Positions 3,001 to 55,340 of a stretch of 64,000 nucleotides of DNA are shown here, one piece after another. The stretch's first letter is position 1, and each line of letters begins with the position of its first letter. The notes under the pieces are model-generated. The model had not been told where the DNA came from, did no database searches, and saw nothing but the letters and a program-made list of their open reading frames with translations. Both the position numbers and the translations under genes were made by a program. The DNA is from Macrostomum lignano (lineage: Eukaryota): assembly GCA_002269645.1 (NCBI GenBank), contig NIVC01002024.1, forward strand, positions 62,001 through 126,000, written 5' to 3'.

Positions 3001-6000
3001 GTTGAAAAAATTGCTGTGGATGTGGTGCAACTTTAAGGCCAATACAAAAGCCTTTTTACTGCAGTGATGTCACCAATGTAGAGATATTTTATGTTTCAGT
3101 TGCGTGGCCTTTAACACAAATTTTCAAATTTTACTGCTTTCCATCGCTCTGATTTTGCAGCAGAAATGATTGCAGCAGCTGATGCAGCTTGAGCGATAGC
3201 TCCGCCTTTGCCTTTTTTCTGAGTTTAAAATTTTTGTAGAGTTGTTTTGGTACAGTTTGCATCCGATAGTTATTAACTTACTATACCGGAACTGAAGACA
3301 CTGCAGTCAGTGAATAAGTATGAGCTGTATTAACTATCGCTGTATTTAAAAATGCACATTTGTACACCTTGTTTGATTTGCTTCCAGTGGTCGCTCCCGT
3401 GGCTTCTGTCACCGTGACGGGCTTCAATGTGACCTGTCTTGATGTAGAGTGGCCAGCCTCCAATACGTCAGGTGTGACATACAACCTGACCTGTGGCTCC
3501 GATTCTCCGATTGATGCCGGCCGAGAGCTGAAAGGCAGTTGCTGCGGTCTGCAGTCAGGAGAGAACCACACGGCAACTGTTGTTGTGGTTAAGGCTGGCT
3601 TTAACAACAGCTCTCCCGCCAGTATAGTGGGACAGACTCGTGAGTTTTCACACCCGATGTTTCTGAGTTTCTTGCCTCAGCGCCGGGGCATTGTTTGATT
3701 CGAATTGTGCACTGAAACCCAGCAAAGGCTTTGCAGTTAGTCTGTAGAAATCGAATTTGAAAATCAAGGAAAGTTTCAAGCAGTGCAATTAGGGCACAAG
3801 AGTGCATTCTATTCACTCACCTTTACTCATAAGTAGTTTTTGTGACGTGGCTTCTTCGATGTTTTTGTGAGGCTTCCGACGTGCATGTAACTATTGTCAT
3901 TTTACAGAGCACTTATGAGGGGTTAATTATTGACCGGAAAGTCCTAACTTACTACTTTCAGTAGCGTAGTGATCTTTTAAGTTTTTTTTGCAACAGCTAT
4001 CCAACAATAGCGCACGATTTATTGTGCTCTAACTGACCTTATTTGTAACACGAATTGCAACCCGGTTTTAGTGGTGTCACCTGTGGCTTCTGTCACCGTG
4101 ACGAACTCCAATGTGACCTGTCTTGATGTAGAGTGGCCAGCCTCCAATACATCGGATGTGACATACGAGCTTGACTGTGGGTCAGGTGCAATTAAAGTGG
4201 ACCCAGGAACCTCAGGCTCCTGCTGCGGTCTGCAGTCAGGAGAGAACCACACAGCAACTGTTGTTGTGGTTAAGGCTGGCTTTAACAACAGCTCTCCCGC
4301 CAGTACAGTGGGACAGACTCGTGAGTTCAGCAGCTCTGTGTGCTCAGATGAGCTGCTCTGAGTCAGATGGCTTTGTTGCTGTGATGCTTTGCGGCTTTTA
4401 GGGATGTTGATTGACAGGGCTGAAGTTTGATTTTTCTGAATTAAATTCCTCTGCAAATCGGAGTGCTTGATGCTTAATTGCTCAGCTGACGCAGGCCTTT
4501 AATTCGACTGTGATGCTTTGCGGCTTTTAGGGATGTTGATTGACGGGGTTGAGCTTTAACTGACGGCTTTGATTTTTATAAATTACTCGTAAATTCCTCC
4601 GCAAAGCAGAATGTAAGTTTACGACAGTTTTTGCCAGGTAGCGAGTTCACCCATGCTTAATAGCTGATCTGACGCAGGCTTGTAATTCAATTTTCAAAGT
4701 GTTGAAAAAATTGCTGTGGATGTGGTGCAACTTTAAGGCCAATACAAAAGCCTTTTTACTGCAGTGATGTCACCAATGTAGAGATATTTTATGTTTCAGT
4801 TGCGTGGCCTTTAACACAAATTTTCAAATTTTACTGCTTTCCATCGCTCTGATTTTGCAGCAGAAATGATTGCAGCAGCTGATGCAGCTTGAGCGATAGC
4901 TCCGCCTTTGCCTTTTTTCTGAGTTTAAAATTTTTGTAGAGTTGTTTTGGTACAGTTTGCATCCGATAGTTATTAACTTACTATACCGGAACTGAAGACA
5001 CTGCAGTCAGTGAATAAGTATGAGCTGTATTAACTATCGCTGTATTTAAAAATGCACATTTGTACACCTTGTTTGATTTGCTTCCAGTGGTCGCTCCCGT
5101 GGCTTCTGTCACCGTGACGGGCTTCAATGTGACCTGTCTTGATGTAGAGTGGCCAGCCTCCAATACGTCAGGTGTGACATACAACCTGACCTGTGGCTCC
5201 GATTCTCCGATTGATGCCGGCCGAGAGCTGAAAGGCAGTTGCTGCGGTCTGCAGTCAGGAGAGAACCACACGGCAACTGTTGTTGTGGTTAAGGCTGGCT
5301 TTAACAACAGCTCTCCCGCCAGTATAGTGGGACAGACTCGTGAGTTTTCACACCCGATGTTTCTGAGTTTCTTGCCTCAGCGCCGGGGCATTGTTTGATT
5401 CGAATTGTGCACTGAAACCCAGCAAAGGCTTTGCAGTTAGTCTGTAGAAATCGAATTTGAAAATCAAGGAAAGTTTCAAGCAGTGCAATTAGGGCACAAG
5501 AGTGCATTCTATTCACTCACCTTTACTCATAAGTAGTTTTTGTGACGTGGCTTCTTCGATGTTTTTGTGAGGCTTCCGACGTGCATGTAACTATTGTCAT
5601 TTTACAGAGCACTTATGAGGGGTTAATTATTGACCGGAAAGTCCTAACTTACTACTTTCAGTAGCGTAGTGATCTTTTAAGTTTTTTTTGCAACAGCTAT
5701 CCAACAATAGCGCACGATTTATTGTGCTCTAACTGACCTTATTTGTAACACGAATTGCAACCCGGTTTTAGTGGTGTCACCTGTGGCTTCTGTCACCGTG
5801 ACGAACTCCAATGTGACCTGTCTTGATGTAGAGTGGCCAGCCTCCAATACATCGGATGTGACATACGAGCTTGACTGTGGGTCAGGTGCAATTAAAGTGG
5901 ACCCAGGAACCTCAGGCTCCTGCTGCGGTCTGCAGTCAGGAGAGAACCACACAGCAACTGTTGTTGTGGTTAAGGCTGGCTTTAACAACAGCTCTCCCGC

Positions 6001-7039
6001 CAGTACAGTGGGACAGACTCGTGAGTTCAGCAGCTCTGTGTGCTCAGATGAGCTGCTCTGAGTCAGATGGCTTTGTTGCTGTGATGCTTTGCGGCTTTTA
6101 GGGATGTTGATTGACAGGGCTGAAGTTTGATTTTTCTGAATTAAATTCCTCTGCAAATCGGAGTGCTTGATGCTTAATTGCTCAGCTGACGCAGGCCTTT
6201 AATTCGACTGTGATGCTTTGCGGCTTTTAGGGATGTTGATTGACGGGGTTGAGCTTTAACTGACGGCTTTGATTTTTATAAATTACTCGTAAATTCCTCC
6301 GCAAAGCAGAATGTAAGTTTACGACAGTTTTTGCCAGGTAGCGAGTTCACCCATGCTTAATAGCTGATCTGACGCAGGCTTGTAATTCAATTTTCAAAGT
6401 GTTGAAAAAATTGCTGTGGATGTGGTGCAACTTTAAGGCCAATACAAAAGCCTTTTTACTGCAGTGATGTCACCAATGTAGAGATATTTTATGTTTCAGT
6501 TGCGTGGCCTTTAACACAAATTTTCAAATTTTACTGCTTTCCATCGCTCTGATTTTGCAGCAGAAATGATTGCAGCAGCTGATGCAGCTTGAGCGATAGC
6601 TCCGCCTTTGCCTTTTTTCTGAGTTTAAAATTTTTGTAGAGTTGTTTTGGTACAGTTTGCATCCGATAGTTATTAACTTACTATACCGGAACTGAAGACA
6701 CTGCAGTCAGTGAATAAGTATGAGCTGTATTAACTATCGCTGTATTTAAAAATGCACATTTGTACACCTTGTTTGATTTGCTTCCAGTGGTCGCTCCCGT
6801 GGCTTCTGTCACCGTGACGGGCTTCAATGTGACCTGTCTTGATGTAGAGTGGCCAGCCTCCAATACGTCAGGTGTGACATACAACCTGACCTGTGGCTCC
6901 GATTCTCCGATTGATGCCGGCCGAGAGCTGAAAGGCAGTTGCTGCGGTCTGCAGTCAGGAGAGAACCACACAGCAACTGTTGTTGTGGTTAAGGCTGGCT
7001 TTAACAACAGCTCTCCCGCCAGTATAGTGGGACAGACTC
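1..7039 (+). repeat. Tandem array of a 1700-bp unit (just over 4 units visible), each carrying two FN3-like cassette exons (A 252 nt, B 249 nt) plus their introns
   Basis: ORFs recur every 1700 bp (first A-to-A interval 1701); copies differ at only a few positions; every exon has AG/GT and phase 1 on both sides. Confidence 0.97.
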
Positions 7040-10000
7040 GTGAGTGCAGTAGCTCAATCTTTTTTCCCCATTTCTTGCTTATTTGAAATAAAATGCATCC
7101 GTTAATTTATTCGCAATCTGCTTATTTTAGTCCTGTCTCCCGTGGCCAACGCGTCCATCGCTTGGAGTTCAACTTACGAGAGCGTGCACGTGAGCTGGAA
7201 TGCCTCCAGCAGTCGCGACGTGCAGTACTCAGTTACCATCGGCTCAAATACCGCAAAACAGCTGAACGAGACCAGCACGAACCAAACTAGCTTAAGCCCC
7301 GGCTCAGTGCAGAGTATTAAAATCATTGTTAAGAAGGCCGGCTTCGCGGATTCATTGCCGGCGATGTCGAAGGCTCTGACTAGTAAGATGCGGGTTTAAA
7401 TAAAAGTTTGAGCGAACAGGTCACGCTATAAAGCATTTAATCAGAGAAGCTGTGTGTGGATTTACGATTCAAATATTTTAATACGGAGTTAACACAACAT
7501 TTCAGAGCCCCGTCTCAACGCCAGCAGCGCCACATTTAGCACCGACTTTACGCTGGACGCCGTAACGCTGGCCAACTCTGCTCTAAGCGCAGTTTGGAAT
7601 AACACCGTCGCAATTGGTGCAGACTTTCTGAGCATCGATTTGAAATCTTTAAAGCTTAATATGAATATGAGAGAGACATTTGATAAGTTGAAAGCAGAGT
7701 TTAAAGGCGAATACGCCTATTCGGATAATGTAACCATTGAAGTGGTGGCTGTTGCCGAAAAAGACGGTTTGGTACAAAACAGCTCCGGAACTTATACGGT
7801 TGTACAGCGTACAGGTGAGTGGCTGATGCTTGCAGGTGCAATTTATAATCGGGGCTTGCAATCTGTTTAGGGTTGCCATACTCGTATTGGGTGCTTTTAG
7901 GCTGTGTGAGTAAGTATTTTCTTCAGTAGTTTTGGCTCTTTTGTAGTTCATAGTCTTGTGAAACCTGAGGATTGTGAACTTTAGAATTCTCATATGGTTG
8001 CTGTTTGTAGAGTTTAGGGTTGGTGGAATTCGGGGTTTGTGGAGTTGGGGTTTGTGGAATCGGGGGTTTGTGAACTTGGTGTTTGGGGAGGTTCGGGGTT
8101 TGTGGATTTTGTGTTTGTGGAGTCAGGGGTTTGTGAAGTTAGGGTTTGTGGAATTGTGGCTTTGTGGAGTTGGGGCTTTGTGGAGTTGGGGGTTTGTGGA
8201 ATTGAGGGTTTGTGATTTTGGAGTTTGGGAAGTTAAGGGTTTGTGGAGTTGGGGTTTGGGGAGTTAGGGTTGTGGAGTTGGGGTTTGGGGAGTTAGGGTT
8301 GTGGAGTTGGGGTTTGGGGAGTTGAAGGTTTGTGGCGTTGGGGTTTGTGGAGTTAAGGGTTGTGGAGTTGGGGTTTGTGGAATTTGTGTTTTTGAATTTG
8401 GGGTTTGTAGAGATGGGGGTTTGTGGAGTTGGGGTTTGGGGAGTTGAAGGTTTGTGGCGTTGGGGTTTGTGGAGTTAAGGGTTGTGGAGTTGGGGTTTGT
8501 GGAGTTGGGGGTTTGTGGAGTTGGGGGTTTGTGGAGTTAAGGGTTGTGGAGTTGGGGTTTGTGGAATTTGTGTTTTTGAATTTGGGGTTTGTAGAGATGG
8601 GGGTTTGTGAAGTTGGGGTTTGTGGAATTTGTGTTTGTGAAGTTGGAGTTTGTGGAGTTGGGGGTTTGTGGAGTTGGAAGTTTGTGGAGTTGTGGCTTGC
8701 GAAACCTGCCCTTTCACAAGACTGGCATTTTATCTTCATAATTTGATTGTCAATCAATTTCAGATCCTAGCGCGCCTAATGCGACTTGGACATCTGTGAA
8801 TAGTAGAAGCCTCAAAGTCAAACTGGAGGCCACCTCGCATTCTGAGCTGCTCATTGCACAACTTAGCAATATTGCTGGCAACGTCTTATTCAATAAATCT
8901 TGCCCTCGATGGATGCAGTCCTGCGAACTCGAGTTCCAGCCGCTGTCGCCCCACACGAACTACTCGCTTAATGTCAACGCTGCCTATTACGAGCGAACGT
9001 CGCCAGCGGTAGAGCCGAGACAGCAGGAGACTCTACAGGATTCACCAGCGGCTCCGCAAGATGCTCGGGTCACCAACCTCAGCGCCGACTCGCTAAAGCT
9101 GTCTTGGTCGCCTCCGTCCGAGCCCAACGGTGTCATCATTGCCTACACCGTGCGCTGCTTCGCTAACGGCATCGGCTCCGGAAACGACTCCGTGCCGAAG
9201 AACGTCACACTTAACGCCGGCACTAACACTACCTTTAACGCCACCATTAACGACTTGTCTCCCGGAGTCCAGTTCGACTGCAGCGTCACCGCGTGGACCT
9301 CGGCGGGCGAGAGTCCGTCCAGCCCTAAAACTAATCTGACTTTGCTCGACGATCTGGCACCGAGCAAGTCACTGGACGAGGTGCCTCGGTTTGCCAGCCG
9401 CCGTGGGCAAGGCGTGGTTTCGCTGTGGAAGAGTTTCCAGTTTAGCCGAGGCCTGATATTTGAGTACGTCCTGCGGCTGGATAAGATCAACGTTAGCAGC
9501 GGTAACAGCCCCATTAGCTGCTCTTTTGCGGCTAGAATAGTGTGCACCGACTGTTCGCGAAGTCAACTCCCCGCGTTGAGTGAACTGGACGGCTGCTCAA
9601 ATGTGACAAATTCGAGCTTCAGCTTCAGCCAGACTAACGGCCAGGACCTGCAGGTGGACACTGGCGACATTCTGGAGCCGTACACGCCTTACCGAATCAC
9701 CGTGTGGCCGGTGAATCGAGCCGGTCCAGGTCCGAACAGCACCAGCTCCGTTGCCCGAACACTTGAGCAGCCGAGCGATCCAGTTAGCTCGCCAGTTCTG
9801 ACGCCTGACAAGCGCCAGATTGACCTGAAATTCGGCCTGCCAGCCGTGACTCGAGGCCGCATCATGGCCTACACTGTTAGCTTAAGTGCCAGCAATGGAA
9901 GCTGTATTGGGGGCTACGTGATGGACTTGAATTTGACCTGCGAGCTGTCACCGCCGGATAAGTGCAACGTTAGCGACACAGTCAACCAGCTGCTCTCTGG

Positions 10001-13000
10001 CTGTTCGCCGATCTCCAACATCAGCTCGTCGGCACCCATCAAGCTGCTTGGCCTGTGGCCCTGGGCCAACTACAGCGTGTCCGTGACGCCAGTCAGCCAG
10101 ACTCTGGCCGGACAGACTTGGAGTCGCACCGATCGAACTCTGCCGGACACGCCTGATCCACCTGAAGGTCTCAATGTGAAGGAAATAGGAGACACATTCG
10201 CTGTGCTGGGCTGGACTCCGCCTACTATGCTGAATGGCGTGTTCCAGCAGTACTGGTTCAGGATTGAAACAGGCTCTGTTAAAAGTCTTTGGACTTTGCT
10301 GCCTGACTATTCTTTAGAGGTAAGTAGAACAGCAGCATTAAACACCCGTGAGGGCGGAGCCAATTGGGCCAGATGTGCAACCGACAGCGCATCTGAAGGC
10401 TGCGTTCGGCTGTTCAGTCCAAGGACTGGAGGGGGGGGGGTCGCCACACACAGCCTCAATTACCACAGCTAATGTACATTATCCAGTCCACTGAAATGTA
10501 CATCGCTGCTTTAGGCTGGAATTCCGGAAAGGCAATAAAATTGGGGCAGGGGGGATAGTTGGATGGTTTAAAGCTAATAAATCAGTAAGAACCAAAAAAT
10601 GAGCCTTGGCTAATACATGAAAATGCTTGTTTAACTTACTACTGATCTGTAAGTAGTTTATACGCGAATGTGCTGAGTGGCCCATCTAGTTATTCTAGTA
10701 TCTGTGCCTAATTCTGGTACCCAGTTTACAGCTGGGTGAACTGAAGCAATTCAGAGTTAAGTGTCTTGCTCAAGGACACAAAATGTTTCGGGTGGGACTG
10801 GGAATCGAACCCCCGGCCTTCAAGTCGTGAGTCCGACGCTCTAACCACTAGGCTACAACTCTCAGAGTGTGCGAGCAAGGTCAGGTCAGCTGTTCAAGTT
10901 TAAGATGAGAACCTCGCATTCATTCAACATCTCTCTTCAGACCTACCGGGCGACCCCCCTCACTCAGTGCGGTAACTACAACTTTAAGCTACTCACGGAG
11001 AACAATTACGGCAACAGCAGCGAGGCTTCCGTCCCCAGCAAAACAAAAATTGGCGATCTAAGCGCCAGTGTGGTTGTTCGCAACGTTACCGCCATAGAAA
11101 CAACTCATGATACTGTTAAGCTGACCTGGAAAGCAGTTACTCACGGCTTATGCGATGTCAGTTACAACGTAGTTCGGAACTCCTCCACTCCTAAAACGGA
11201 AACTGGTGCAACCCACCTGGCACCTGATCTGCTACCCTACACTTGGTACCATTTTACTATCGAAGCTAAAGTGGAATTCAATGGAGCAACGGAAACTGCC
11301 GCAGTGACGCCATCTGCTGGTATTGTGATTCGAACCGACCCGTACAAAGCCACCAAGCCGAGAGGCTTTGCCTGTTCACCTGTGCCTAATCAGCTCAATA
11401 AGGTGCGATGCACCTGGCAGCAGCCTGATCGCTTCAACGGCGTACCGATCCGCTACGAACTACAGCTGCTCAACACTCCGCCAGGTGTTAAAGTATTCGA
11501 GACTTTGCCTTATAATGCTTCTACGCTAGGCCTCACCATAACCAGCTTGGCCTATATTAAGCCTGAAGATCAGCTCAGATTCGGAGTGCTGCTGGTTAAC
11601 ACGCCTGGTGGAGAAATAAAAGGCTTTGAGGAACAGATTAGCACTCCGGTGGAAATTACACCTGGCAAGGCCTACAGTGTGCCAGGTGTTAATATTCAAG
11701 TGAGTGCGGGGAATGGGACTGACGTGTGGGTCAGAATCACCCCATCGCACTCCGACATCACCCACCTCACTTCAAAATCACCCACCTCACTCTGGCATAA
11801 CCCACCTCACTCCAGAATCACCCACCTCACTCTGGCATAACCCACCTCATTCCAGCATCACCCACCTCACTCTGGCATCACCCCACCTCACCCCAGCATC
11901 ACTCCACCTCACTCCAGCATCACCCACCTCACTCCAGAATCACCCACCTCACTCCAGAATCACCCATCTCACTCCAGAATCACCCACCTCACTCCAGAAT
12001 CACCCACCTCACTCCAGAATCACCCACCTCACTCCAGAATCACCTAACTCACTCCAGAATCACCCACCTCACTCCAGAATCACCCACCTCACTCCAGAAT
12101 CACCCACCTCACTCCAGAATCACCCACCTCACTCCAGAATCACCCACCTCACTCCAGAATCACCCACCTCACTCCAGAATCACCCACCTCACTCCGGCAT
12201 CACCCACCTCACTCCGGCATCACCCCACCTCACCCACCTACCCAGGACGGCGCCAACGTAGAACAAATCGGTCACGAAAAGATCAAAATCAACTTGGAAG
12301 GCTTCTCCAAAGCATTCAACGACAGCTACGGCAAAATTCGGTACTGCCGATTGCTAGTTGGCCAAGACAAGCTCAGCGACGCCGAGTGGACTCTGGACGG
12401 AGATCGCAATTACGCTGGCAGCGACCGGGGCTACAAACGGCCGTACGCGTTCAACGTCAGCTGCGGCTCGGCACCCGTCAACACGGAGCCGTTCCGCGCT
12501 TCATCAGCGTCGAGGCTTGCCGCGCCATCATCTGTCGTCGACGAAACGACGGTGATCATCGGCAGCGGCTCGGAGGATTGCGTCGGCGAGTGCAACGGTC
12601 CGCTGACGTACGAGCAGCCCTACAGAGTGTACTTGGTAGCTTGCACTAGTGCGGGCTGCAGCCTCTCCAATGCCAACATCAAATTCACCACCGGGTTCAA
12701 CCACTTGCTTCGCCAGCTCATCGGTGGCATTGTTGGCGGGGTGCTGGGCGCGCTGCTGGTGGTTGCCATCGTGGTTCTACTCATTAAACGAATGGACAAG
12801 TGCAAGGGCGGGTGAGTCATTGAGCTCTGATCGTAGGGGGTTGAAATTACAGTTGTTGGATGGATTCAGGCGTGAGCAGGAGTGAGCTGGGTGTCTGTGA
12901 AGTGAGCTGGGTGTCTGTGGAGTGAGCTGGGTGTCTGTGAAGTGAGCTGGGTGTCTGTGGAGTGAGCTGGGTGTCTGTGAAGTGAGCTGGGTGTCTGTGA

Positions 13001-15149: not shown

Positions 15150-18100
15150 ATATCTATCTCTCTATCTATCTATTTATTTATCTGTCTGTTTTGGTGTCTG
15201 TGTCTGTCTGTATGTCTGTTTGACCTTCACCTGATATCTTTCTAGCGCCAGGCGTAAAACGGCACTAGCGCAGTGATTTATTGGTACTGCAAATTTTTTG
15301 TATATAAATAATTTTTTGGCAACCATTTCTAGTTTTTTGCTACTTAGATCTTTAACTAACTGAAATAATAACATTTTATCTTCATTCACCGGTTTGTAGT
15401 GCAATGTTACTAATTAGTTTGTAGTTTAAAATGAATATTTCAGAGCCCCTCATGGTTAGTTGATTTGATTTTAAAACATAATGCTTTTAATTGATTGACT
15501 GTCACTCGATCACGGTTTAAACTGTGAATGTGAAATTCACATTCTGTGAATTGCTGACCGACTCGTTGGTACAAAAACACCTGCGACAATCCAAAGAAGT
15601 TCCATAGAAATCAGTCCAAAGCTTTCATGAAATTTGGTTTAAAAGAGTTTTATAGTAAATCTATTACATGACAATATTAAAATCCGCGAAAAATTTAATA
15701 GAAATTGAAAAAAACCGCGGAAATTCCATAGAAAACGGTTAAAATCCGCGAAATATTTCATAGAAATTGAAAAAAACGCGGAAATTCCATAGAAAACGGT
15801 TAAAATCCGCGAAATATTTCATAGAAATTGAAAAAAACGCGGAAATTCCATAGAAAACGGTTAAAATTCGCGAAATATTTCATGGAAATTGAAAAAAAAC
15901 GCGGAAATTCCATAGAAAACGATGAAAACTCGGTCGGAACATTTCATAGAAATCTGACGCAAACTTCGCCTTCCAATCCGCAGGTCCGAATCGCCGATTC
16001 CTCGCGCAGTTGCCATCGCCGATTTCCGTCGCTACGTCGGCTTCATGCTGAGAGACAGCGAGCTGGAAGTTCACCGACAGTTCGAAGAGATTAAGGAGGC
16101 CGCTTTGGAACGCGAGCAGAAAGATTTCAGCCTCAACGTAGCCACGGCCGACTGCAACAGGGCAAAGAACCGGTACACGGACATCCTGCCCTACGACCAT
16201 ACTCGGGTTGTTCTCGAGTCAAGCTACGAAGGACCTGGCCACGCTCCGGACGACTACATTAATGCCAACTACATCAAGTAAGACAGATTTAATTTGCTCT
16301 AATAATTTTTACTGCTCTGATTTCTGCTAAAGTCGGTCGAATGCTTTTGCGGCGTGGGTCAGGGTTGTGCGAGTGGGTCAGGGTTGTGCGAGTGGGTCAG
16401 GGTTGTGCAAGTGGGTCAGGGTTGTGCGAGTGGGTCAGGGTTGTGCAAGTGGGTCAGGGTTGTGCGAGTGGGTCAGGGTTGTGCAAGTGGGTCAGGGTTG
16501 TGCGAGTGGGTCAGGGTTGTGCAAGTGGGTCAGGGTTGTGCGAGTGGGTCAGGGTTGTGCGAGTGGGTCAGGGTTGTGCGAGTGGGTCAGGGTTGTGCAA
16601 GTGGGTCAGGGTTGTGCGAGTGGGTCAGGATTGTGCGAGTGGGTCAGGGTTGTGCGAGTGGGTCAGAGTTGTGCAAGTGGATCAGGGTTGTGCGAGTGGG
16701 TCAGGGTTGTGCAAGTGGGTCAGGGTTGTGCGAGTGGGTCAGTGTTGTGCGAGTGGGTCAGGGTTGTGCGAGTGGGTCAGGGTTGTGCAAGTGGGTCAGG
16801 GTTGTGCGAGTGGGTCAGGATTGTGCGAGTGGGTCAGGGTTGTGCGAGTGGGTCAGAGTTGTGCAAGTGGATCAGGGTTGTGCGAGTGGGTCAGGGTTGT
16901 GCGAGTGGGTCAGGGTTGTGCGAGTGGGTCAGTGTTGTGCAAGTGGGTCAGGGTTGTGCGAGTGGGTCAGGGTTGTGCGAGTGGGTCAGTGTTGTGCAAG
17001 TGGGTCAGGGTTGTGCGAGTGGGTCAGGGTTGTGCGAATGGGTCATAATGATTCAGGTGTGTCACAATGAGAAGGCGGGGCATGATGAGGAATTGGAGAG
17101 GAGAGTCATGATGGAAAAGTGAGTCATGATGGAGAAGTGAGTCATGATGGAGAGGTGAGTCATGATGGGAAAGTGAGTCATGATGGGAAAGTAAGTCATG
17201 ATGGGAAAGTGAGTCATGATGGGAAAGTAAGTCATGATGGGAAAGTAAGTCATGATGGAAAGTGAGTCATGATGGGAAAGTGGGTCATGATGGTAAAGTG
17301 AGTCATGACGGGAAAGTGAGTCATAATGGGAAAGTGAGTCATGACGGGAAAGTGAGTCGTGGTTTTAAAACGGTTAGTTAAGGAGTCGTATCGTGGAGGG
17401 TAAAAATAGGTCAAATAACAAACTGTAGAACATTCGTACAAAATAGCAAACACAAAAAAATCTGCTACTTACTACTGATACAAAACTGTGCCAATTGAAT
17501 TACAGGGGCCTGGATCGCGAGCGCGAGTTCATAGCCAGCCAGGGCCCAATCCAGGGCACCATTGACGATCACTGGCGCATGATCTACCAGCACAAGGTGA
17601 CGCTGATCCTCACGCTCACCCAGTGCCAAGAGGGCATGAAGAGAAAGTCGGAGCGCTATTGGCCAGAGATTGTTGGCCAGTGCGAGACCTACGATGAGAT
17701 CAAAGTTTTCCTTGAGAGCGAGAGCGAGATGGGATCCTACACTGTGCGCAGGATGTCTGTCACCTGCTCTACTGACAGGTCGGTACTCCTGTTTGTGATT
17801 ATTTGGGATATGAAGAATAGGATCGTGCCAGAGTCGCTGCAGAATCGCTGAATTGGTCTAAAGCGCATCCGCGTCACTTAATGAATTAGGATCGCTACAC
17901 ATAAAGTCTACTACACACGACTATTGGAAGAATTTTTGCGAATATTTATTAACAACCCTCCAATCTCCATAGAAACCAGACGGAGCCGCTTCAGGTGGTG
18001 CAGCTCTTCTACCTGGGCTGGGCTGACTACAACGTGCCGAATGTCGACGACCTCGCCGACTTCCTCGCCCAGATGCGCAGCTACGCGCCGAAGTTGAGGC

Positions 18101-21100
18101 GAAGCGACGACGAGCCGCCGATTCTCGTGCACTGCAGCGCCGGGGTCGGACGGACCGGCACCCTGATCGCGCTGGACATCCTGGTGCGCTCGCTGGAGCT
18201 GCGCGGCGCCAAAACCATCAACGTGTTTGAGACGGTCATGCAGCTGCGGGCCTGCCGCAAACTCATGGTGCAGACCAAGGTGAGGGTTTGGGGTCACGGT
18301 GCAGACCAAGGTGAGGGTTTGGGGTCATGGTGCAGACCAAGGTGAGGGTTTGGGGTCATGGTGCAGACCAAGGTGAGGGTTTGGGGTCATGGTGCAGACC
18401 AAGGTGAGGGTTTGGGGTCATGGTGCAGACCAAGGTGAGGGGTTGGGGTCACGGTGCAGACCAAGGTGAGGGTTGTGGGTCACGGTGCAGACCAAGGTGA
18501 GGGTTTATTTGGGGTCATGGTGCAGACCAAGGTGAGGGTTTATTTGGGGTCATGGTGCAGACCAAGGTGAGGGTTTGGGGTCATGGTGCAGACCAAGGTG
18601 AGGGTTTGGGGTCATGGTGCAGACCAAGGTGAGGGTTTATTTGGGGTCACGGTGCAGACCAAGGTGAGGGTTTGGGGTCACGGTGCAGACCAAGGTGAGG
18701 GTTTATTTGGGGTCACGGTGCAGACCAAGGTGAGGGTTTGGGGTCACGGTGCAGACCAAGGTGAGGGTTTATTTGGGGTCATGGTGCAGACCAAGGTGAG
18801 GGTTTGGGGTCATGGTGCAGACCAAGGTGAGGGTTTGGGGTCATGGTGCAGACCAAGGTGAGGGTTTATTTGGGGTCATCATGGTGCAGACCAAGGTGAG
18901 GGTTTGGGGTCATGGTGCAGACCAAGGTGAGGGTTTGGGGTCATGGTGCAGACCAAGGTGAGGGTTTATTTGGGGTCATCATGGTGCAGACCAAGGTGAG
19001 GGTTTGGGGTCATGGTGCAGACCAGGGTGAGGGTTTGGGGTCACGGTGCAGACCAAGGTGAGGGTTTATTTGGAGTCATGGTGCAGACCAAGGTGAGGGT
19101 TTGGGGTCATGGTGCAGACCAAGGTGAGGGTTTATTTGGGGTCATGGTGCAGACCAAGGTGAGGGTTTATTTGGGGTCATGGTGCAGACCAAGGTGAGGG
19201 TTTATTTGGGGTCATGGTGCAGACCAAGGTGAGGGTTTGGGGTCATGGTGCAGACCAAGGTGAGGGTTTGGGGTCATGGTGCAGACCAAGGTGAGGGTTT
19301 ATTTGGGGTCATGGTGCAGACCAAGGTGAGGGTTTGGGGTCATGGTGCAGACCAAGGTGAGGGTTTATTTATGGTCATGGTGCAGACCAAGGTGAGGGTT
19401 TATTTGGGGTCATGGTGCAGACCAAGGTGAGGGTTTATTTGGGGTCATGGTGCAGACCAAGGTGAGGGTTTATTTGGGGTCATGGTGCAGATCAAGGTGA
19501 GGGTTTGGGGTCATGAAGAGGTCATAGAGGATGAGTGAAATTATGAAGGTCATAGGATGGAATGGGGTCATTGAATGTGGAAATTAACATCCGATGGTCA
19601 TGAGAAGGTAAAGAAGATCATGAGAGGGTGGGAAGGGTCATGAGAGGGTGGAAAGGGTCGTGAGAGGGTGGAAAGGGTCATGAGAGGGTGCAAAGGAAAA
19701 TTTCATGAGAGGGTGGAAAGGGTCATGAGAGGGTGTAACTGTAAAGTGTCATGAGAGGGTCATGAGAGTGTGTAACTGTAAAGTGTCATGAGAGGGTCAT
19801 GAGAGGGTGTAACTGTAAAGTGTCATGAGAGGGTCATGAGAGGGTGTAACTGTAAAGTGTCATGAGAGGGTCATGAGAGGGTGTAACTGTAAAGTGTCAT
19901 GAGAGGGTCATGAGAGGATAGATCAAATCTGGGTGTTGGTCAACCCTGAACTTGCCAATTCACACCCTCTCACAGGGCCAGCTGGCTTTCATTTATCGCT
20001 TTATGATAAACTACCTGGATTCGCATAACTACTTGGAGCCAATTGACGGTCCAAATTCAGGTAAAGTTGGCGTCGGTGACTTTTTATTATTGTTTCATGT
20101 AATGCGACTGCTTGTAATAAAATCTTTCTTTCAGGAGTATTGCAATTTCCTATGCATGTACTGTTTCATAAGTGTTCATCAACTCACATGGGTGATCACC
20201 AACTGTCACATGGGTGATCACCAACTGTCACATGGGTGATCACCAACTGTCACATGGGTGATCACCAACTGTCACATGGGTGATCACCAACTGTCACATG
20301 GGTGTTCATTAACTGTCTCATAGGTGTTCACCAGCTGTCTCATAGGTGTTCACCAACTGTCACATGGGTGTTCACCAACTGTCACATAGGTGTTCACCAA
20401 CTGTCACATGAGTGTTCACCAACTGTCACATGGGTGTTCACCAACTGTCACATAGGTGTTCACCAACTGTCTCATAGGTGTTCACCAACTGTCACATGGG
20501 TGATCACCAACTGTCACATGGGTGCTCACCAACTGTCACATGGGTGATCACCAACTCACATGGGTGATCACCAACTGTCACATGGGTGCTCACCAACTGT
20601 CACATGGGTGATCACCAACTCACATGGGTGATCACCAACTGTCACATGGGTGCTCACCAACTGTCACATGGGTGATCACCAACTGTCACATGGGTGATCA
20701 CCAACTGTCACATGGGTGCTCACCAACTGTCACATGGGTGATCACCAACTCACATGGGTGATCACCAACTGTCACATGGGTGCTCACCAACTGTCACATT
20801 GGTGATCACCAACTGTCACATGGGTGATCACCAACTGTCACATGGGTGCTCACCAACTGTCACATGGGTGATCACCAACTCACATGGGTGATCACCAACT
20901 GTCACATGGGTGCTCACCAACTGTCACATGGGTGATCACCAACTGTCACATGGGTGATCACCAACTGTCACATGGGTGATCACCAACTGTCACATGGGTG
21001 ATCACCAACTGTCACATGGGTGATCACCAACTGTCACATGGGTGTTCATTAACTGTCTCATAGGTGTTCACCAGCTGTCTCATAGGTGTTCACCAACTGT

Positions 21101-23488
21101 CACATGGGTGTTCACCAACTGTCACATAGGTGTTCACCAACTGTCACATGAGTGTTCACCAACTGTCACATGGGTGTTCACCAACTGTCACATAGGTGTT
21201 CACCAACTGTCTCATAGGTGTTCACCAACTGTCACATGGGTGTTCACCAACTGTCACATAGGTGTTCACCAACTGTCACATAGGTGTTCACCAACTGTCT
21301 CATAGGTGTTCACCAACCGTCTCGTGATATTTCACTAAATGTCACACAGATGTTCATCAACTCACATAGGTGTTCACCAACTGTCACATAGGTGTTCACC
21401 AACTGTCACATGGGTGTTCACCAACTGTCACATTGGTGTTCACCAACTTTCACATGGGTCTTCACCAACTGTCACATGGGTGTTCACCAACTGTCACATT
21501 GGTGTTCACCAACTTTCACATAGGTCTTTACCAACTGTCACATGGGTGTTCACCAACTGTCACATGGGTGTTCACCAACTGTCACATAGGTGTTCACCAA
21601 CTGTCACATAGGTGTTCACCAACTGTCACGTAGGGTTCACCAACTGTTATATGGGTGTTCACCAACTGTCACATGGGTGTTCACCAACTGTCACATAGGT
21701 GTTCACCAACTGTCACATAGGTGATCACTAACTTTTTAAGACTTACCGAGGAATATCTTTAGGGTTTCAAACACGCATGAACCTGATTCAACACAAGACT
21801 AAATAATTATTGAATTCCTGGCTGTCTCGCTTCAAGAGACTCCAGCACGTGTGATCTCCTTGCCACCAGCAGTGGAGCTGGTAGAATGCGGCCCAGCGCT
21901 GCATGGCCACCAGCGACAGTTGTCCAGCGTGTCCGCTTAACAGAGAAAATGTTAAAAGTACACAAGATGGAAGTCTGTCGCCATCTATGGGGCACTGTGC
22001 ACTTTTTAAAATTCTCTATGGCACTTTCCTCTGTATCTGGTACTACGAGACTGTACTACTCATGACCACATGCCCTTGTCTGCACCTCTCACTGTGACTG
22101 TCTCACTCTCACTGTGACTGTCTCACTCTCACTGTGACTGTCTCACTCTCACTGTGACTGTCTCACTCTCACTGTGACTGTCTCACTCTCACTCTCACTG
22201 TGATTGTCTCACTCTCACTGTGACTGTCTCACTCTCACTGTGACTGTCTCACTCTCACTGTGATTGTCTCACTCTCACTCTCACTGTGACTGTCTCACTC
22301 TCACTGTGACTGTCTCACTCTCACTGTGATTGTCTCACTCTCACTGTGATTGTCTCACTCTCACTGTGACTGTCTCACTCTCACTGTGATTGTCTCACTC
22401 TCACTGTGACTGTCTCACTCTCACTCTCACTGTGATTGTCTCACTCTCACTGTGACTGTCTCACTCTCACTCTCACTGTGACTGTCTCACTCTCACTGTG
22501 ATTGTCTCACTCTCACTGTGACTGTCTCACTCTCACTGTGATTGTCTCACTCTCACTCTCACTGTGATTGTCTCACTCTCACTGTGACTGTCTCACTCTC
22601 ACTGTGACTGTCTCACTCTCACTGTGATTGTCTCACTCTCACTGTGATTGTCTCACTCTCACTGTGACTGTCTCACTCTCACTCTCACTGTGATTGTCTC
22701 ACTCTCACTGTGATTGTCTCACTCTCACTCTCACTGTGATTGTCTCACTCTCACTGTGACTGTCTCACTCTCACTCTCACTGTGACTGTCTCACTCTCAC
22801 TGTGATTGTCTCACTCTCACTGTGACTGTCTCACTCTCACTGTGATTGTCTCACTCTCACTGTGACTGTCTCACTCTCACTCTCACTGTGATTGTCTCAC
22901 TCTCACTGTGACTGTCTCACTCTCACTCCAACTGTGACTGTCTCACTCTCACTCTCACTGTGACTGTCTCACTCTCACTCTCACTGTGACTGTCTCACTC
23001 TCACTCTGTCTCACTCTCACTCTCACTGTGACTGTCTCACTCTCTCTCTTTGGCTGTCTCACTCTCACTCTCCCTGTGATTGTCTCACTCTCACTCTGTC
23101 TCACTCTCACTCTCCCTGTGACTGTCTCACTCTCACTCTCACTGTGACGGTCTCACAGTTACTTATTGTGACTGTCTCACTCTCTCTCTCTCTCACTCCT
23201 ATTATGTCATCTTTTATTTTCCAGGCTTTTTGAACTCTGAAAAACTGAATTTATTTTCTTGGTAAAAGTTACTTTTTCTGGTATTATTTATATATTCATA
23301 AAACAGCTCAATAAATTTGCTATTACTCTACTCGCAGTAGAGCAAAGAAAATCTGCGTTAAAATAAAATAAAAATTTTTTTCTACTGCAGACCCGAGAGA
23401 CATGGAGATGAGCGCCGTATATGTAACTCCGCGCCATAGCGTGGCCGGAGCGTCGAATCCCGCTTACCAGGCAGACGAGCGAGTTTAA
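1..23488 (+). CDS. RPTP gene 1: R3-subtype receptor protein tyrosine phosphatase (many FN3, TM, single PTP domain), 5' end outside window
   Basis: Frame-consistent GT/AG exon chain: <1-238, 672-920, 1688-1939, 2372-2620, 3388-3639, 4072-4320, 5088-5339, 5772-6020, 6788-7039, 7131-7382, 7506-7814, 8764-10319, 10941-11699, 12246-12811, 13445-13489, 15984-16277, 17506-17778, 17973-18279, 19976-20060, 23391-23488 (TAA). Motifs: juxtamembrane [47 protein letters not shown]. Confidence 0.92.
7131..7814 (+). CDS. RPTP1 ectodomain exons 7131-7382 (FN3) and 7506-7814 (divergent beta-rich domain)
   Basis: ttttag|TC CTG TCT CCC GTG GCC...ACT A|gtaag; atttcag|AG CCC...ACA G|gtgagt; both phase 1-1. Confidence 0.8.
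8005..8695. repeat. Degenerate G/T-rich minisatellite (GGGGTTTGTGGAGTT-like)
   Basis: Direct reading; intronic. Confidence 0.9.
8764..10319 (+). CDS. RPTP1 large multi-FN3 exon
   Basis: ORF 8796-10472 has repeated FN3 signatures (P.APQDARV..LSWSPP..PNGVI..YTV; DLSPGVQF; [15 protein letters not shown]); aatttcag acceptor, GAG|gtaagt donor. Confidence 0.9.
10675..10859 (-). mobile_element. tRNA-derived CORE-type SINE
   Basis: Minus strand: A box TAGCCTAGTGGTTAGAGCG, B box GGTTCGATTCCC, then GTGTCCTTGAGCAAGACACTTAAC...CAGCTGTAAACTGGG, resembling the MIR/CORE consensus (GTGACCTTGGGCAAGTCACTTAAC...CATCTGTAAAATGGG). Confidence 0.8.
10941..11699 (+). CDS. RPTP1 FN3 exon
   Basis: ctctcttcag acceptor; [13 protein letters not shown] and [16 protein letters not shown] motifs; CAA|gtgagt donor. 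Confidence 0.88.
11735..12240. repeat. 20-nt minisatellite CACCCACCTCACTCCAGAAT
   Basis: About 25 units filling the intron up to the 12245 acceptor. Confidence 0.92.
12246..12811 (+). CDS. RPTP1 membrane-proximal domain and transmembrane exon
   Basis: [19 protein letters not shown] (R3-type juxtamembrane motif), then hydrophobic [23 protein letters not shown] followed by KR. Confidence 0.92.
12880..13408. repeat. 20-nt minisatellite GTGAGCTGGGTGTCTGTGAA
   Basis: About 26 near-identical units. Confidence 0.95.
13665..14125. repeat. 21-nt minisatellite CCTCACCCCATTGGCTGGCCT-like
   Basis: Direct reading. Confidence 0.9.
14903..15215. repeat. (TCTG)n microsatellite
   Basis: Direct reading. 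Confidence 0.95.
15680..15920. repeat. About 60-nt tandem repeat, about 4 copies (AAATCCGCGAAATATTTCATAGAAATTG...)
   Basis: Direct reading. Confidence 0.85.
15984..20060 (+). CDS. RPTP1 PTP catalytic-domain exons (15984-16277, 17506-17778, 17973-18279, 19976-20060)
   Basis: [58 protein letters not shown]|GQLAFIY; splice phases 2,2,0,1 join in frame. Confidence 0.95.
16352..17045. repeat. 19-nt minisatellite GTGGGTCAGGGTTGTGCGA
   Basis: About 36 units. Confidence 0.95.
17100..17358. repeat. 18-nt minisatellite GTGAGTCATGATGGGAAA
   Basis: About 14 units. Confidence 0.9.
18265..19515 (+). repeat. 31/35-nt minisatellite CATGGTGCAGACCAAG|GTGAGGGTTTGGGGT containing the exon end and 5' splice site
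   Basis: The first unit is the coding end (M-V-Q-T-K) and donor of the PTP signature exon; roughly 37 units. Confidence 0.95.
19615..19915. repeat. TCATGAGAGGG-based 20-nt and 37-nt repeats
   Basis: Direct reading. Confidence 0.85.
20168..21730. repeat. 22-nt minisatellite CACCAACTGTCACATGGGTG(A/T)T
   Basis: About 70 units with higher-order variant blocks. Confidence 0.95.
22085..23195. repeat. 20-nt minisatellite CTCACTGTGACTGTCTCACT
   Basis: Direct reading. Confidence 0.95.
23391..23488 (+). CDS. RPTP1 probable last coding exon ([32 protein letters not shown])
   Basis: tttttttctactgcag acceptor, phase 1 matching the 20060 donor; GC-rich island in AT-rich flank; stop followed by AT-rich UTR. 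Confidence 0.72.
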
Positions 23489-27417: not shown

Positions 27418-30400
27418 ATGAGTAAAGGTATTGCTATTTTGCTAGCCATCATAGCGAGCTTGGTGCTGGCTTCTCTGGAAAATCCAACCAGTGAGCAGTC
27501 TAGGCCTAGTTCAACTGCCGCTTCAACTGCCGCTTCAACTGCCTCTACAACTGCTGCTTCAACTGCCTCTACAACTGCCGCTTCAACTGCTTCTACAACT
27601 GCCGCTTCAACTGCCTCTACAACTGCCGCTTCAACTGCTTCTACAACTACCGCTTCAACTGCCTCTACAACTGCCGCTTCAACTGCTTCTACAACTACCG
27701 CTTCAACTGCCTCTACAACTGCCGCTTCAACTGCTGCTTCAACTGCCTCTACAACTAACGCTTCAACTGCCGCTTCAACTGCCGCTTCAACTGCCGCTTC
27801 AACTACCGCTTCAACTGCCGCTTTAACAGCCTCTACAACTGCCGCTTCAACTGCCTCTACAACTGCCGTTTCAACTGCCTCTACAACTACCGCTTCAACT
27901 GCCGCTTCAACTGCCTCTACAACTGCCGCTTCAACTGCCTCTACAACTACCGCTTCAACTGCCGCTTCAACTGCCTCTACAACTGCCGCTTCAACTGCCT
28001 CTACAACTACCGCTTCAACTGCCGCTTCAACTACCGCTTCAACTGCCGCTTTAACAGCCTCTACAACTGCCGCTTCAACTGCCTCTACAACTGCCGTTTC
28101 AACTGCCTCTACAACTGCCGCTTCAACTGCCTCTACAGCTGCCTCTACAACTGCTACAACAGCCAACTTGACAAAGCAGACTACGACAAATTCCCGCACA
28201 ACTCAACCCTCAACTACAACTACAGCTGCAACTACCGTAACAACAGCTGGCAGTGCAGTGCAAACCACGCCAGAACCAGTAGAACTTCCTAATCTAAAAG
28301 TGCAGGTGAATCGTACAACAACACAATTGATAGAGATTGTTTGGTCCTGGCCAGACAATGTCAGTCAGGTGGTGAAACATTTAAATCTGACATATTTTGT
28401 CAACTGCGACTCCAGAGCTGCTGCAGAGGAGACACAATCAATGAGGCACACTTGTTATTACAATTCAAGTGGAGAAGTCTACAACATCACCATTAGAGCC
28501 GTTGCTGATGGTCCCGATTATAGGGAAGGTCCAACGCAGTGGCTGCTGGCAACAACAAGTGAGTAAAATATGGATGGGCAATAGATGGACCCTATGAAAC
28601 AAACTATGTTCAGCTGTAGATAAAAATCAAATTCTCTACTAGATTCAAGTAAGATAAGAAAAGCTGTTTTGGTCGTCTTAGATTCGTGTACCAAATGCTT
28701 TACCACACAAGTGATAATGTCAACAATTTTATTGTAAACTTTATTAAACAAGCTTTCCATAAAATTATATGTTTAGATTCGTAATAATTTGCCAGCAATT
28801 TTTAAAGCTGGAAAGGCTTAAGCTTGTGCTTCAGAGTTTTTAGTGTGCAACACTCTCTTAGCTCGTAGTGTTAACCTTATGGATAGAAAAGTTTGCTGGC
28901 GCCAACATCTGTTTATCAGTGGCATTCCATTGGTAAGGCCATTAAATACACTTTGTATAAAAATGGTACTTCAATTGGTCAATTAGCTATGAGTTTATGA
29001 AATATTGTTTTTAAAAGTGACCCACAATAATTACGGTAGGCTAAGAATATTTTGCCATAGAGTGAGGCTATACTGCACTCGTTCACTCTCAATCACTCGA
29101 TCACAAACGAGGCATTCAAATAAATTGTTTGTTAAAGTACAATAAAATTCGCTGTTGTAAAATTTCGACATAGTGAAAATTCGGGTTTATGGAACGAAGC
29201 TATCAGTATATACATGTAATTATCTTGACTTACTTGACTTAGCTGCAGGGCGGTCCGAAGACGCAGCGGGGAGGCGAGCGTCGCCCATTCCGCTAATCCC
29301 GGAAAGGCCCGCAAAGGCTAGGGCGCGGGGCCGGTCAGGGAGGTCTGCCGGTCCTGTCTGCAGCGTTGCCTTCGGTGGGAAAGACGGAGGCTCGCTTGGT
29401 GGCCCGGAGAAACCGGGTGAGCCGTGGGATGTTCTCGGGCCGGCAAACGTCGTCCAGGGACGGGTTGGGCCCGAGGTGGTTGAGCCGGTCTCGGTTGAAG
29501 GCCGGGCAGTAGCAGACGAAGTGCTTGGCGTCTTCGTTCTCGAGGTTGCATTAAGGGCAGAGTTCGCTCCGGCGAACGCTTCGGAGGAAACAGTGCCTGG
29601 CAAAGCAACCGAGACCTGTGAAGGTCATAGTGAGAGCGCGGATATCTTTTCGATTTTGGTTCAAAAGGATTCTCCGCAGCTTGAGGGATGGATTGGGCAC
29701 TGCCGTACGAGATTGTCGGCAGTTGGAGACACCATCCCATCTGCGCAAGTGCAGGTTAATGACAGTGGCGGGGATGGGGGCCAGGGGCACGGGGCCAAGG
29801 AGCGAGCCGGAACAGCCCGCCTTAGCGAGGGAGTCGGCGAGCTCGTTACCTTTGAAGCCAGCGTGTCCTGGGATCCACGTAAGCCGGACGGTGTTCCTCC
29901 GAGCCAGCTTGTTGAGCTGCCCGATACAGTCGCGGACTGTTCAGGAGTTCGTAGTGGTGTGACACAGGGCCTGCAAAGCGGCCTGGCTGTCAGGGTGGAA
30001 GAATATTCTTCTGTCCTTGAAGTCCCTGCAGTGGAGCTCAGCTGCACAGGAGCTGATGGCAAGGACTTCATTCTGGAAGACGCTGGAGAGTCTGCCAGTG
30101 TGTTGGGCGTGAGTGACGATCACGCGTCCGTTGATAAGGACGCAGACTCCAAAGCCGGATAAACCGTCTTTGGAGGATCCGTCAGTAAAGCAGTGAACCT
30201 CCTGAGGGGCCCAGCTGTCGTTGGCGTTCTCCCTAGAGGGGATAGTGACCTTGAAGCGTTGGTAGTGAAGTTTAGCGCTTGTGAAGTTTAGCGCTTGTGA
30301 AGTTCAGCGCTTGTGAAGTTCAGCGCTTGTGAAGTTTAGCGCTTGTGAAGTTTAGCGCTTGTGAAGTTTAGCGCTTGTGAAGTTTAGCGCTTGTGAAGTT

Positions 30401-46165: not shown

Positions 46166-46856
46166 GATGAGGGGGGGGGTTTCACAAACTCGAAATTTCA
46201 CAACGTCGAAAGCACCTTCTTTCACAAGGTCGAAATTTCACAAGGTCGAAATTTCATAACATCGAAAACTCAAATAGCAGCCACTTTCACAAGGTCGAAA
46301 ATTCACAAGGTCGAAATTTCACAACATCGAAAACTTTAGCAAAGGGCTTCATAAGGTCGAAAATTCACAAGGTCGAAATTTCACAACATCGAAAACTCGA
46401 AAAGCAGCCACTTTCATAAGGTAGAAATTTCACAAGGTCGAAATTTCACAACATCGAAAACTTTAGCAAGAGACTTCATAAGGTCGAAATTTCATAAGGT
46501 CGAAATTTCACAACGTAGAAAACTACTGTATGGTTCTTGATAGATAAAATTTTCGACTTTGTGAAATTTCGAGCTTATGAAGTTTCGACCTTGTGAAAGT
46601 GGCTGCACTTGAGTTTTCGATGTTGTGAAATTTCGACCTTGTGAAATTTCGACCTTATGAAATCTCTTGCTAGATTTTTCGATGTTGTGAAATTTCGACC
46701 TTGTGAAGTTTCGACCTTGTGAAATTTCGACCTTATGAAGTCTCTTGCTAAAGTTTTCGATGTTGTGAAATTTCGACCTTGTGAAGTTTCGACCTTGTGA
46801 AATAATTTACTTTTCGACGTTGTGAAATTTCGACCTTGTGAAAGCACCCCCTCATC
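46166..46856. mobile_element. Foldback/MITE-like element with long inverted arms made of GGTCGAAATTTCACAA subrepeats
   Basis: Left arm GATGAGGGGG...TTTCACAA..CGAAATTTCACAACGTCGAAA; right arm is the reverse complement ending CCCCCTCATC; short central spacer near 46530. Confidence 0.8.
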
Positions 46857-54770: not shown

Positions 54771-55340
54771 CTTGACTTACTTGACTGAGATGCAGGGTGG
54801 TCTGTAGACCGTAGACACGGCAAAGGAGGTAAGGATCACCCATTCCGCTAGCGGCGACTAGCCCCTGAAGGCTACAAACATGCAGAGGCATGGGACCAGT
54901 TGTCAGTCTGTCCTGCAGTATGCATGATCTTCTTCTGTAAGGAAGAAAGTGGCTGAAGGATCTTGTTGTCTGAAGGAACTTGATGAGGCATGGGATGCTA
55001 TTGGGCTAGCAGACCTCATCAATGGACAGGTTTGGCCCAATCTAGTATATCCAGTCTCTTTCTGGTAAAGAAAGGGCAGGGACAAACAAAGTGCTAAGCA
55101 TCTTCATTGTCATATTCACAAAAAGGACAAGGTTCACTCTCGAGATCCAACCTCGGAGGAAGCAGTGTCTAGCGAGGTAGTAATGGTAATGGGGTCATGA
55201 CAGGGGTGTAAATATCCTTCCAGTTTTGGTTTAGAAGCACATTCTTGAGCCTTCAAGAGAGGCAACAGAACTGCAGTGCATGATTGCCAGCAGTTTTGGG
55301 TGCTCATCCATCTGTCCCCTGTGAAGGGAATCAGCTCAGT
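54771..55340 (-). mobile_element. Older 3' remnant of the same Loa/R1-like family as 29224-30263
   Basis: Minus translation CPFCEYDNEDA*HFVCPCPFF..KRL; 3' UTR TAGCGGAATGGGTGA...GACCACCCTGCATCTCAGTCAAGTAAGTCAAG matches the 29.2-kb copy. Confidence 0.8.

Follow-up and report, generated by a model that had tools for sequence, protein, structure and literature searches.

The stretch of DNA analyzed here (64,000 nucleotides (nt); hereafter the window) derives from the flatworm Macrostomum lignano (positions 62,001 to 126,000 of contig NIVC01002024.1, GenBank assembly GCA_002269645.1) and is eukaryotic, rich in introns and scattered with many minisatellites. It contains two paralogous protein tyrosine phosphatase (PTP) genes, which lie in tandem and in the same orientation on the + strand with their PTP exons ca. 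20.3 kb apart, and which are referred to as copy 1 and copy 2. The pair represents old, diverged tandem duplicates of a classical receptor-type tyrosine phosphatase (RPTP). In both genes the PTP domain is encoded by four exons (A–D; Table 1), the third of which, exon C, is nearly identical in the two copies, while exons A and B are 77–80% identical. Judging from the sequence of the window, this is very probably the result of a recent, non-reciprocal interlocus gene conversion between the paralogs.

The two copies of exon C match at 306 out of 307 nt. The sole mismatch, at position 18150 (A in copy 1 vs. C in copy 2; GGA vs. GGC), concerns a Gly codon in the AGVGRTG motif and is synonymous. The identity extends beyond the exon, with 412 matches in an ungapped run of 413 nt, and thereby reaches not only silent but also non-coding positions, i.e., three intron-derived repeat units. 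The divergence of exon C is significantly below that of the flanking homologous exons: the synonymous divergence (dS) is 1.29 for exon A, 2.16 for exon B and saturated for exon D, with a non-synonymous divergence (dN) of 0.25, 0.17, and 0.31 and with 31 out of 91, 23 out of 91, and 8 out of 20 amino acids different, respectively, while exon C has a dS of 0.014 (one difference over 74.7 synonymous sites) and a dN of 0. At the rate of synonymous difference found for exons A, B, and D together (0.68 per site), ca. 51 differences would be expected in exon C where one was observed, a deficit with a binomial P of 7e-36. Even those stretches of exons A and B in which the protein is invariant still differ at 36–41% of their codons. 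Further conversion tracts were not found in exons A, B, and D, where the longest run of identical codons is 10 (permutation P = 0.18). Selection at the protein level is ruled out as the cause of the identity, because the intron-derived repeat sequence is identical too. A preliminary description of this DNA had already listed the single GGA/GGC difference, the match of the first repeat units including a CAC variant, and ca. 23 differences over the 91 amino acids of the preceding exon, all of which are borne out here. It also rightly labeled exon C the catalytic signature exon, with exact boundaries, as this exon encodes the equivalent of the WPD loop (WAD), the catalytic signature loop and the start of the Q loop. 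Its proposal of a recent ectopic conversion over 20 kb is the best-supported explanation, on the strength of the identity at silent sites and in the intron repeats next to saturated neighboring exons.

The right-hand part of the identical run lies in a minisatellite, which is built from the end of exon C itself. Its 31-nt unit, TCATGGTGCAGACCAAG/GTGAGGGTTTGGGG (slashes within sequences mark junctions), joins the final 17 nt of exon C to the initial 14 nt of the following intron, so that every unit repeats the exon end together with the strong splice donor AAG/GTGAGG. Tandem Repeats Finder (TRF) reports a period of 31 (or 66) with 38.2 copies in copy 1 and 6.6 copies in copy 2, and the unit variants are interspersed. 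In copy 1 these variants follow each other in the order CAAAAFGBBAADCDCBAAEAAEAHIABBBAABAJBB+; the array is flanked on both sides by TCATG direct repeats and its last unit continues in register into unique intron sequence (..GGGGTCATG/AAGAGG; also ...GGGGTCATG/AAGAGGTCATAGAGG). Both arrays open with a unit ending in TCAC, followed by two TCAT units, and each of the six units of copy 2 is of a type that is also present in copy 1, none being private to copy 2. The array of copy 2 stops at the exon/intron junction of a unit, in ACC-CAG/GTAAAG, after which unrelated intron follows. This terminal unit has Gln instead of Lys as its last codon and a different splice donor, and its likeness to the repeat unit (Table 1) is at the level of the old divergence between the paralogs. 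We infer that it may be the original end of exon C in copy 2 with its own splice donor, and would thus mark the right-hand junction of the converted tract. Beyond the arrays, the only similarity between the introns is degenerate and GGTCAT-rich. Minisatellites also occur in nearly every other intron of both PTP genes (e.g., 16354–17358, 19719–21733, 37224–37482, and 39191–41132); their units are unrelated between the paralogs, and only the exon C array starts within an exon and is common to both genes.

In a conversion as envisaged here, a segment of ca. 0.4–0.5 kb, containing exon C in full and the first part of the intron minisatellite, would have been copied from one paralog to the other through homology-directed repair, for which a break in the recipient followed by synthesis-dependent strand annealing is one possibility. 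The array itself may have been born in the intron of copy 1 by slippage of the 31-nt junction-spanning segment between two TCATG repeats. On the left the tract in the recipient would end at the first base of the exon, where the homology between the paralogs begins. On the right the exon end of copy 2 would have paired, out of register, not with the exon end of the donor gene but with one of the repeat units downstream of it, which would have placed six units in front of the original exon end and splice donor of copy 2. A tract of this length is typical of interlocus conversion, and both of its boundaries are located at limits of the paralog homology. Copy 1 was probably the donor and copy 2 the recipient, a direction suggested by the anatomy of the arrays, that of copy 1 being in register with unique intron and bracketed by TCATG and that of copy 2 ending at a unit junction, as well as by the base composition of exon C, of which the G + C content at third codon positions (GC3) is nearer to that of the other exons of copy 1 than to those of copy 2. 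An unequal crossover is excluded, since both flanks are still copy-specific. Insertion mediated by a transposon was likewise rejected; the left junction falls at precisely the position of the exon that is homologous in the two copies, and homology junctions are present on both sides. Now that arrays are present in both genes, exon C is bordered by at least 200 nt of near-perfect homology, which should favor further exchanges, whereas exons A, B, and D (77–80% identical) have escaped homogenization.

Two elements of the preliminary description need qualification in the light of these data. It contrasted a homogenized active site with diverging ligand-facing parts, but exons A and B are also catalytic (e.g., the KNRY phosphotyrosine loop) and have not been homogenized; the actual limits of the tract are the end of the paralog homology on the left and the minisatellite on the right. 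In addition, it treated the repeat as a mere passenger, while the repeat is derived from the exon/intron junction, would have been transferred together with the exon and points to the direction of the transfer.

The composition and surroundings of exon C suggest that the exchange was not the first at this place. The GC3 of exon C is 0.91 and that of all other coding blocks at the locus is 0.48–0.78 (Fisher p = 3e-10 vs. the rest of copy 1, 2.6e-5 vs. the adjacent PTP exons of copy 1, and 6e-9 vs. copy 2). Such an excess is the signature expected of repeated GC-biased conversion; being a matter of composition only, it is compatible with this process and no proof of it. Moreover, the intron stretch immediately upstream of exon C is significantly similar between the copies (Table 1), and it is the only exon flank for which this is the case, the flanks of exons A, B, and D giving z ≤ 1.8 on both sides. 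This fits an older, slightly wider tract or, alternatively, a conserved intronic element.

Could the identity of exon C have arisen without any transfer? Extreme constraint at the nucleotide level, imposed for instance by an overlapping element or by very strong codon selection, has in its favor that no part of the PTP fold is more conserved than exon C, that the GC3 of this exon is extreme and that a long antisense open frame overlaps it. Such a frame is, however, expected from a GC3-rich exon, 73.7 of the 74.7 synonymous sites are identical against the many changed codons in the neighboring invariant-protein stretches, and the identity runs on through ca. 100 nt of intron-derived repeat, so that the silent-site and intron identity effectively refutes this explanation. 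An artefact of assembly, gap filling or polishing, by which a truly diverged exon C of copy 2 would have been overwritten by reads from copy 1, is improbable as well. The genome of M. lignano is known for its high repeat content and for the difficulty of its assembly, and the region adjoins a minisatellite; simple and tandem repeats amount to 15% of the genome, and one assembly showed large redundancy at ≥95% identity (PMC5730564). A homologue search with exon C and exon D of copy 2 gave only P0001, the database model of copy 1, and no independent exon C of copy 2. Furthermore, the 1.7-kb tandem units at 1–7045 (see below) show a similar residual difference of ca. 0.2%, which could be near the noise floor of the assembly. 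Against this, reads of an exon C that was 77–80% identical, like exons A and B, would not cross-map, so that polishing would be unable to homogenize it, and the sequence at the left junction is unique, without any repeat from which a false join could result. The copies also differ by one base, in the length and order of their arrays and in the terminal unit, with flanks that are unique on both sides, and the reading frame and splice phases are intact in both. Finally, the older and independent P0001, which stems from another assembly, confirms exon C in the context of copy 1 at the protein level.

The transfer may also have had a longer or a different history than the single conversion outlined above. 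The array may long have been present in both paralogs, with exchanges that start in the arrays, proceed in either direction and repeatedly co-convert exon C, in which case the last event was not necessarily from copy 1 to copy 2. We regard this as possible rather than probable, and it would refine, not contradict, the explanation by gene conversion. The arrays offer 200–1250 nt of near-perfect homology, far above that of the diverged exons, the GC3 excess and the similar, older upstream flank point to more than one event, and the unit orders diverge after the third unit, all in line with such a history. The intron half of the unit is, on the other hand, contiguous with the unique intron of copy 1 and not with that of copy 2, which implies that the array originated in copy 1 and that at least one transfer brought it from there into copy 2; the lack of private unit types in copy 2 agrees with this. 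Conversion templated by RNA or cDNA, for which a transcript of copy 1 spliced at one of the downstream decoy donors of the array (see below) would have served, would place the left end of the tract near the splice acceptor, and this end is indeed within 3 nt of it. The right end falls at the exon/intron junction of a repeat unit, the decoys do not differ in sequence from the real donor, and fragments of retroelement reverse transcriptase occur nearby. The limits of the DNA homology give the same boundaries, however, the introns being unalignable. A cDNA template would be expected to have brought along sequence of exon B or D or to have deleted an intron, neither of which is observed. With the three identical intron bases (tag) being uninformative, this variant is less parsimonious and we consider it very unlikely.

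Several observations nevertheless weigh against a conversion from copy 1 to copy 2 in the simple form described above. Its direction depends on ca. 30 nt of anatomy at the array ends, and the terminal unit of copy 2 could be the degenerate end unit of an older array. The unit order of copy 2 (CAABAD) is not a simple prefix of that of copy 1 (CAAAAFGBB...), which means that the arrays have changed since the event or that their history is more complex. P0005, the sole model of copy 2 from an independent source, ends with exon B and does not reach exon C. There is no polarity towards the array within exon C, as GC3 is 0.91 in each third of the exon and the single difference is located mid-exon. 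The high GC3, lastly, fits biased conversion without proving it.

Table 1. Positions in the window of the exons, repeat arrays and inferred tract of the two PTP gene copies.
Feature	Position	Strand	Remarks
Identical run, copy 1	17970–18382 (partner 38300–38712)	+	3 nt of intron, whole exon C and first three repeat units
Inferred converted tract, copy 2	38300–38790	+	Exon C and six units C-A-A-B-A-D
Exon A	Copy 1 15984–16277; copy 2 36815–37102	+	Splice sites, frame
Exon B	Copy 1 17506–17778; copy 2 37589–37861	+	Splice sites, frame
Exon C	Copy 1 17973–18279; copy 2 38303–38609	+	307 nt; phase 1 start, phase 0 end
Exon D	Copy 1 19976–20060; copy 2 39066–39141	+	Splice sites, frame
Minisatellite, copy 1	18263–19515	+	Ca. 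37–38 units of 31 or 35 nt
Minisatellite, copy 2	38593–38790	+	Six units (31 or 35 nt), order CAABAD; first starts with last 17 nt of exon C
Terminal diverged unit, copy 2	38791–38822	+	GGTGCAGACC-CAG/GTAAAGCCTGGATTCATGG; ca. 76% like the unit, by eye
Upstream flank of exon C	17933–17966 vs. 38262–38296	+	35-nt intron stretch, 83% identical, z = 12
Ectodomain and transmembrane open frames, copy 1	8742–12812	+	fn3 8742–10469 and 10845–11837; membrane-proximal and transmembrane frame 12048–12812
Transmembrane and juxtamembrane exon, copy 2	36535–36720	+	Mapped from P0005

The database proteins nearest to the two genes are, by far, two M. lignano models in UniProt, P0001 for copy 1 and P0005 for copy 2; the remaining matches are receptor tyrosine phosphatases at 30–42% identity. 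The PTP domain (PF00102) is complete in both copies (E 3e-70 and 4e-70), and its exons have canonical AG/GT splice sites, equal phases and open frames in both. Alignment with PTPRS revealed the features of classical class I PTPs, i.e., the KNRY loop, the Asp of the WPD loop, the HCX5R(S/T) signature and the QTKGQ Q loop. The WPD loop reads WAD-YNVP in both copies (18021–18041 and 38351–38371), so that, compared with the usual WPDHGVP, the general-acid Asp is retained but Pro, His, and Gly have been replaced, the Pro of WPD by Ala. With a dN/dS between the copies of 0.19 for exon A and 0.08 for exon B, indicative of purifying selection, and with intact frames, neither copy looks like a pseudogene. 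P0005 differs from copy 2 of the window at 5 out of 97 residues in exon A and by an indel of two residues in the transmembrane (TM) exon (region 36535–37102), but matches it at 93 out of 93 residues in exon B, and probably represents an allelic or, from the duplicated karyotype, a homeologous sequence.

A second PTP domain (D2) is absent from the 64 kb: a tblastn search with the domain, at E up to 5, recovers just the eight known exons, although the 3′ ends of both genes are incompletely modeled. The possibility that the two copies are the D1 and D2 domains of a single gene was rejected, as copy 2 possesses its own TM exon and a predicted start and the two are separate models in UniProt; the retroelement fragments between the copies and the lack of any further PTP domain also argue against it.

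Upstream of the PTP domain the genes have little in common. The two fn3 blocks of copy 1 were matched with E values of 2e-28 and 1e-8, respectively, and the open frame that follows them has a weak match to the membrane-proximal region of PTPRJ-type proteins, followed by a TM segment. In P0005, the only model available for copy 2, ca. 25 residues precede the TM segment, and no domain, fn3 included, was matched in the open frames upstream of copy 2. The preliminary description called the ectodomains barely alignable. Similarity between them is indeed undetectable, but they are more than diverged, with a multi-fn3 ectodomain in copy 1 and these few residues in the model of copy 2. The first part of the window (1–7045) is taken up by a tandem array, within which the window starts, of a 1.7-kb unit; four or more copies are present and neighboring ones are 99.6–100% identical. 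Each unit contains two FN3-like open frames (e.g., 2311–2658 and 3324–3695) with a GC3 of 0.52, and the array has the appearance of ectodomain exons of copy 1 that were amplified very recently.

Copy 1 is a receptor PTP of the R3 type. It shares an fn3 ectodomain, one TM segment and a single PTP domain with the members of this subtype (PTPRJ/DEP-1, PTPRB/VE-PTP, PTPRH, PTPRO, and Drosophila Ptp10D), and the best single-domain structure matches are PTPRJ, VE-PTP, PTPRH, PTPRO, and Ptp10D. The pair differs from them in the modest identity (ca. 35–42%), in the WAD-YNVP sequence of the WPD loop and in the absence of a detectable fn3 ectodomain from copy 2, the fn3 domains having been found for copy 1 only and not in the available model of copy 2.

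Owing to the nature of its unit, the minisatellite supplies additional splice donors, i.e., 36 of the type AAG/GTGAGG in copy 1 (18280–19515) and six in copy 2 (38610–38805), of which five lie in the array and the sixth in the terminal unit. These decoys are identical or nearly identical to the real donor. Their use is predicted to be non-productive in both copies, the frame being shifted at offsets +31 and +62 and a stop being met 21 codons into the reading frame of the array from +93 onward. P0001, itself a predicted model, joins exon C straight to exon D (MVQTK/GQLAFIYRF), a junction that is consistent with use of the first donor. This poses the question of how the spliceosome selects the first of 37 identical donors.

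The remainder of the window contains a number of other features. Short-unit arrays occur in pairs of reverse complements that resemble foldbacks (30265–30414 with 31376–31536, and 46219–46525 with 46551–46843). An 82-nt match of 89% identity between 10466–10545 and 31215–31295 was considered as gene paralogy and rejected, since it falls within the first foldback-like pair and represents a dispersed repeat. Fragments of retroelements are found on the - strand between and after the genes (33804–34403 and 51353–52477), with matches to RNase_H (E 8e-7) and RVT_1 (E 6e-18), and the paralogy on the - strand between 29380–29742 and 54946–55313 probably belongs to such elements. A Ser/Thr-rich frame with a TM-like end at 43691–44161 (- strand) matches the MGC-24/CD164 sialomucins (PF05283, E 1e-7); it lies downstream of copy 2 on the opposite strand and probably represents an unrelated gene. 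The sequence at 30433–30873 (- strand), located between the PTP genes, shows a weak fn3 match (E 2e-4, below the Pfam cut-off).

Islands of interlocus conversion are known from other tandem families, such as the CEACAM/CEA genes (PMC7042247), and from cases of human disease (PMC3966225). The locus in M. lignano resembles these in that a tract of a few hundred bp is shared by linked paralogs of the same orientation, divergence drops sharply, also at silent sites, the tract ends at the limit of homology and the surrounding exons are diverged. It differs in that one side of the tract is fixed in a minisatellite that derives from the 3′ end and splice donor of the exon itself, in that this array would have been carried into the recipient where it left a readable junction, and in that it concerns a flatworm RPTP pair. 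In the library that could be searched, we came across no earlier case from Macrostomum, and no report of a minisatellite derived from a splice junction that was transferred with its exon. Recombination and conversion associated with the hypervariable minisatellites of humans are exchanges between alleles, polarized towards one end of the array. Variant units of 31–35 nt beside the region of exchange and a fast turnover of unit order are features shared with those loci. In contrast, the exchange proposed here is one between paralogs, exon C lacks polarity and there is no sign that the array starts breaks. As for GC-biased gene conversion, a GC3 raised to 0.91 in the converted exon only is what this process resembles, whereas the near-identical 1.7-kb FN3 units have a low GC3 (0.52), so that recent identity alone does not predict a high GC3.

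The process itself is ordinary gene conversion as it is already known, and the current understanding of gene conversion remains unchanged; what is less ordinary is an island tied to a minisatellite of its own splice junction that moved along with it. The locus provides a readable natural case, in which extent, likely direction and both junctions can be derived from one sequence because the array of the donor gene marks the transfer. A practical consequence concerns trees of RPTPs and of gene families in Macrostomum, for which exon C gives a false signal of recent duplication, so that such trees are to be built exon by exon. The case also raises the question of whether the abundant intronic minisatellites of M. 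lignano promote exchange between paralogs. One may speculate, although we think it rather unlikely, that the splice-junction minisatellite is an active element, which, as each of its units repeats the exon end, provides many landing sites for the broken exon end of the paralog, spreads with the exon and keeps it homogenized. If so, the dozens of perfect but non-productive 5′ splice sites could lower expression through unproductive splicing. Should the same hold widely in M. lignano, with its introns full of tandem repeats, arrays derived from splice junctions would represent a driving force behind exon-specific concerted evolution that has not been described before.

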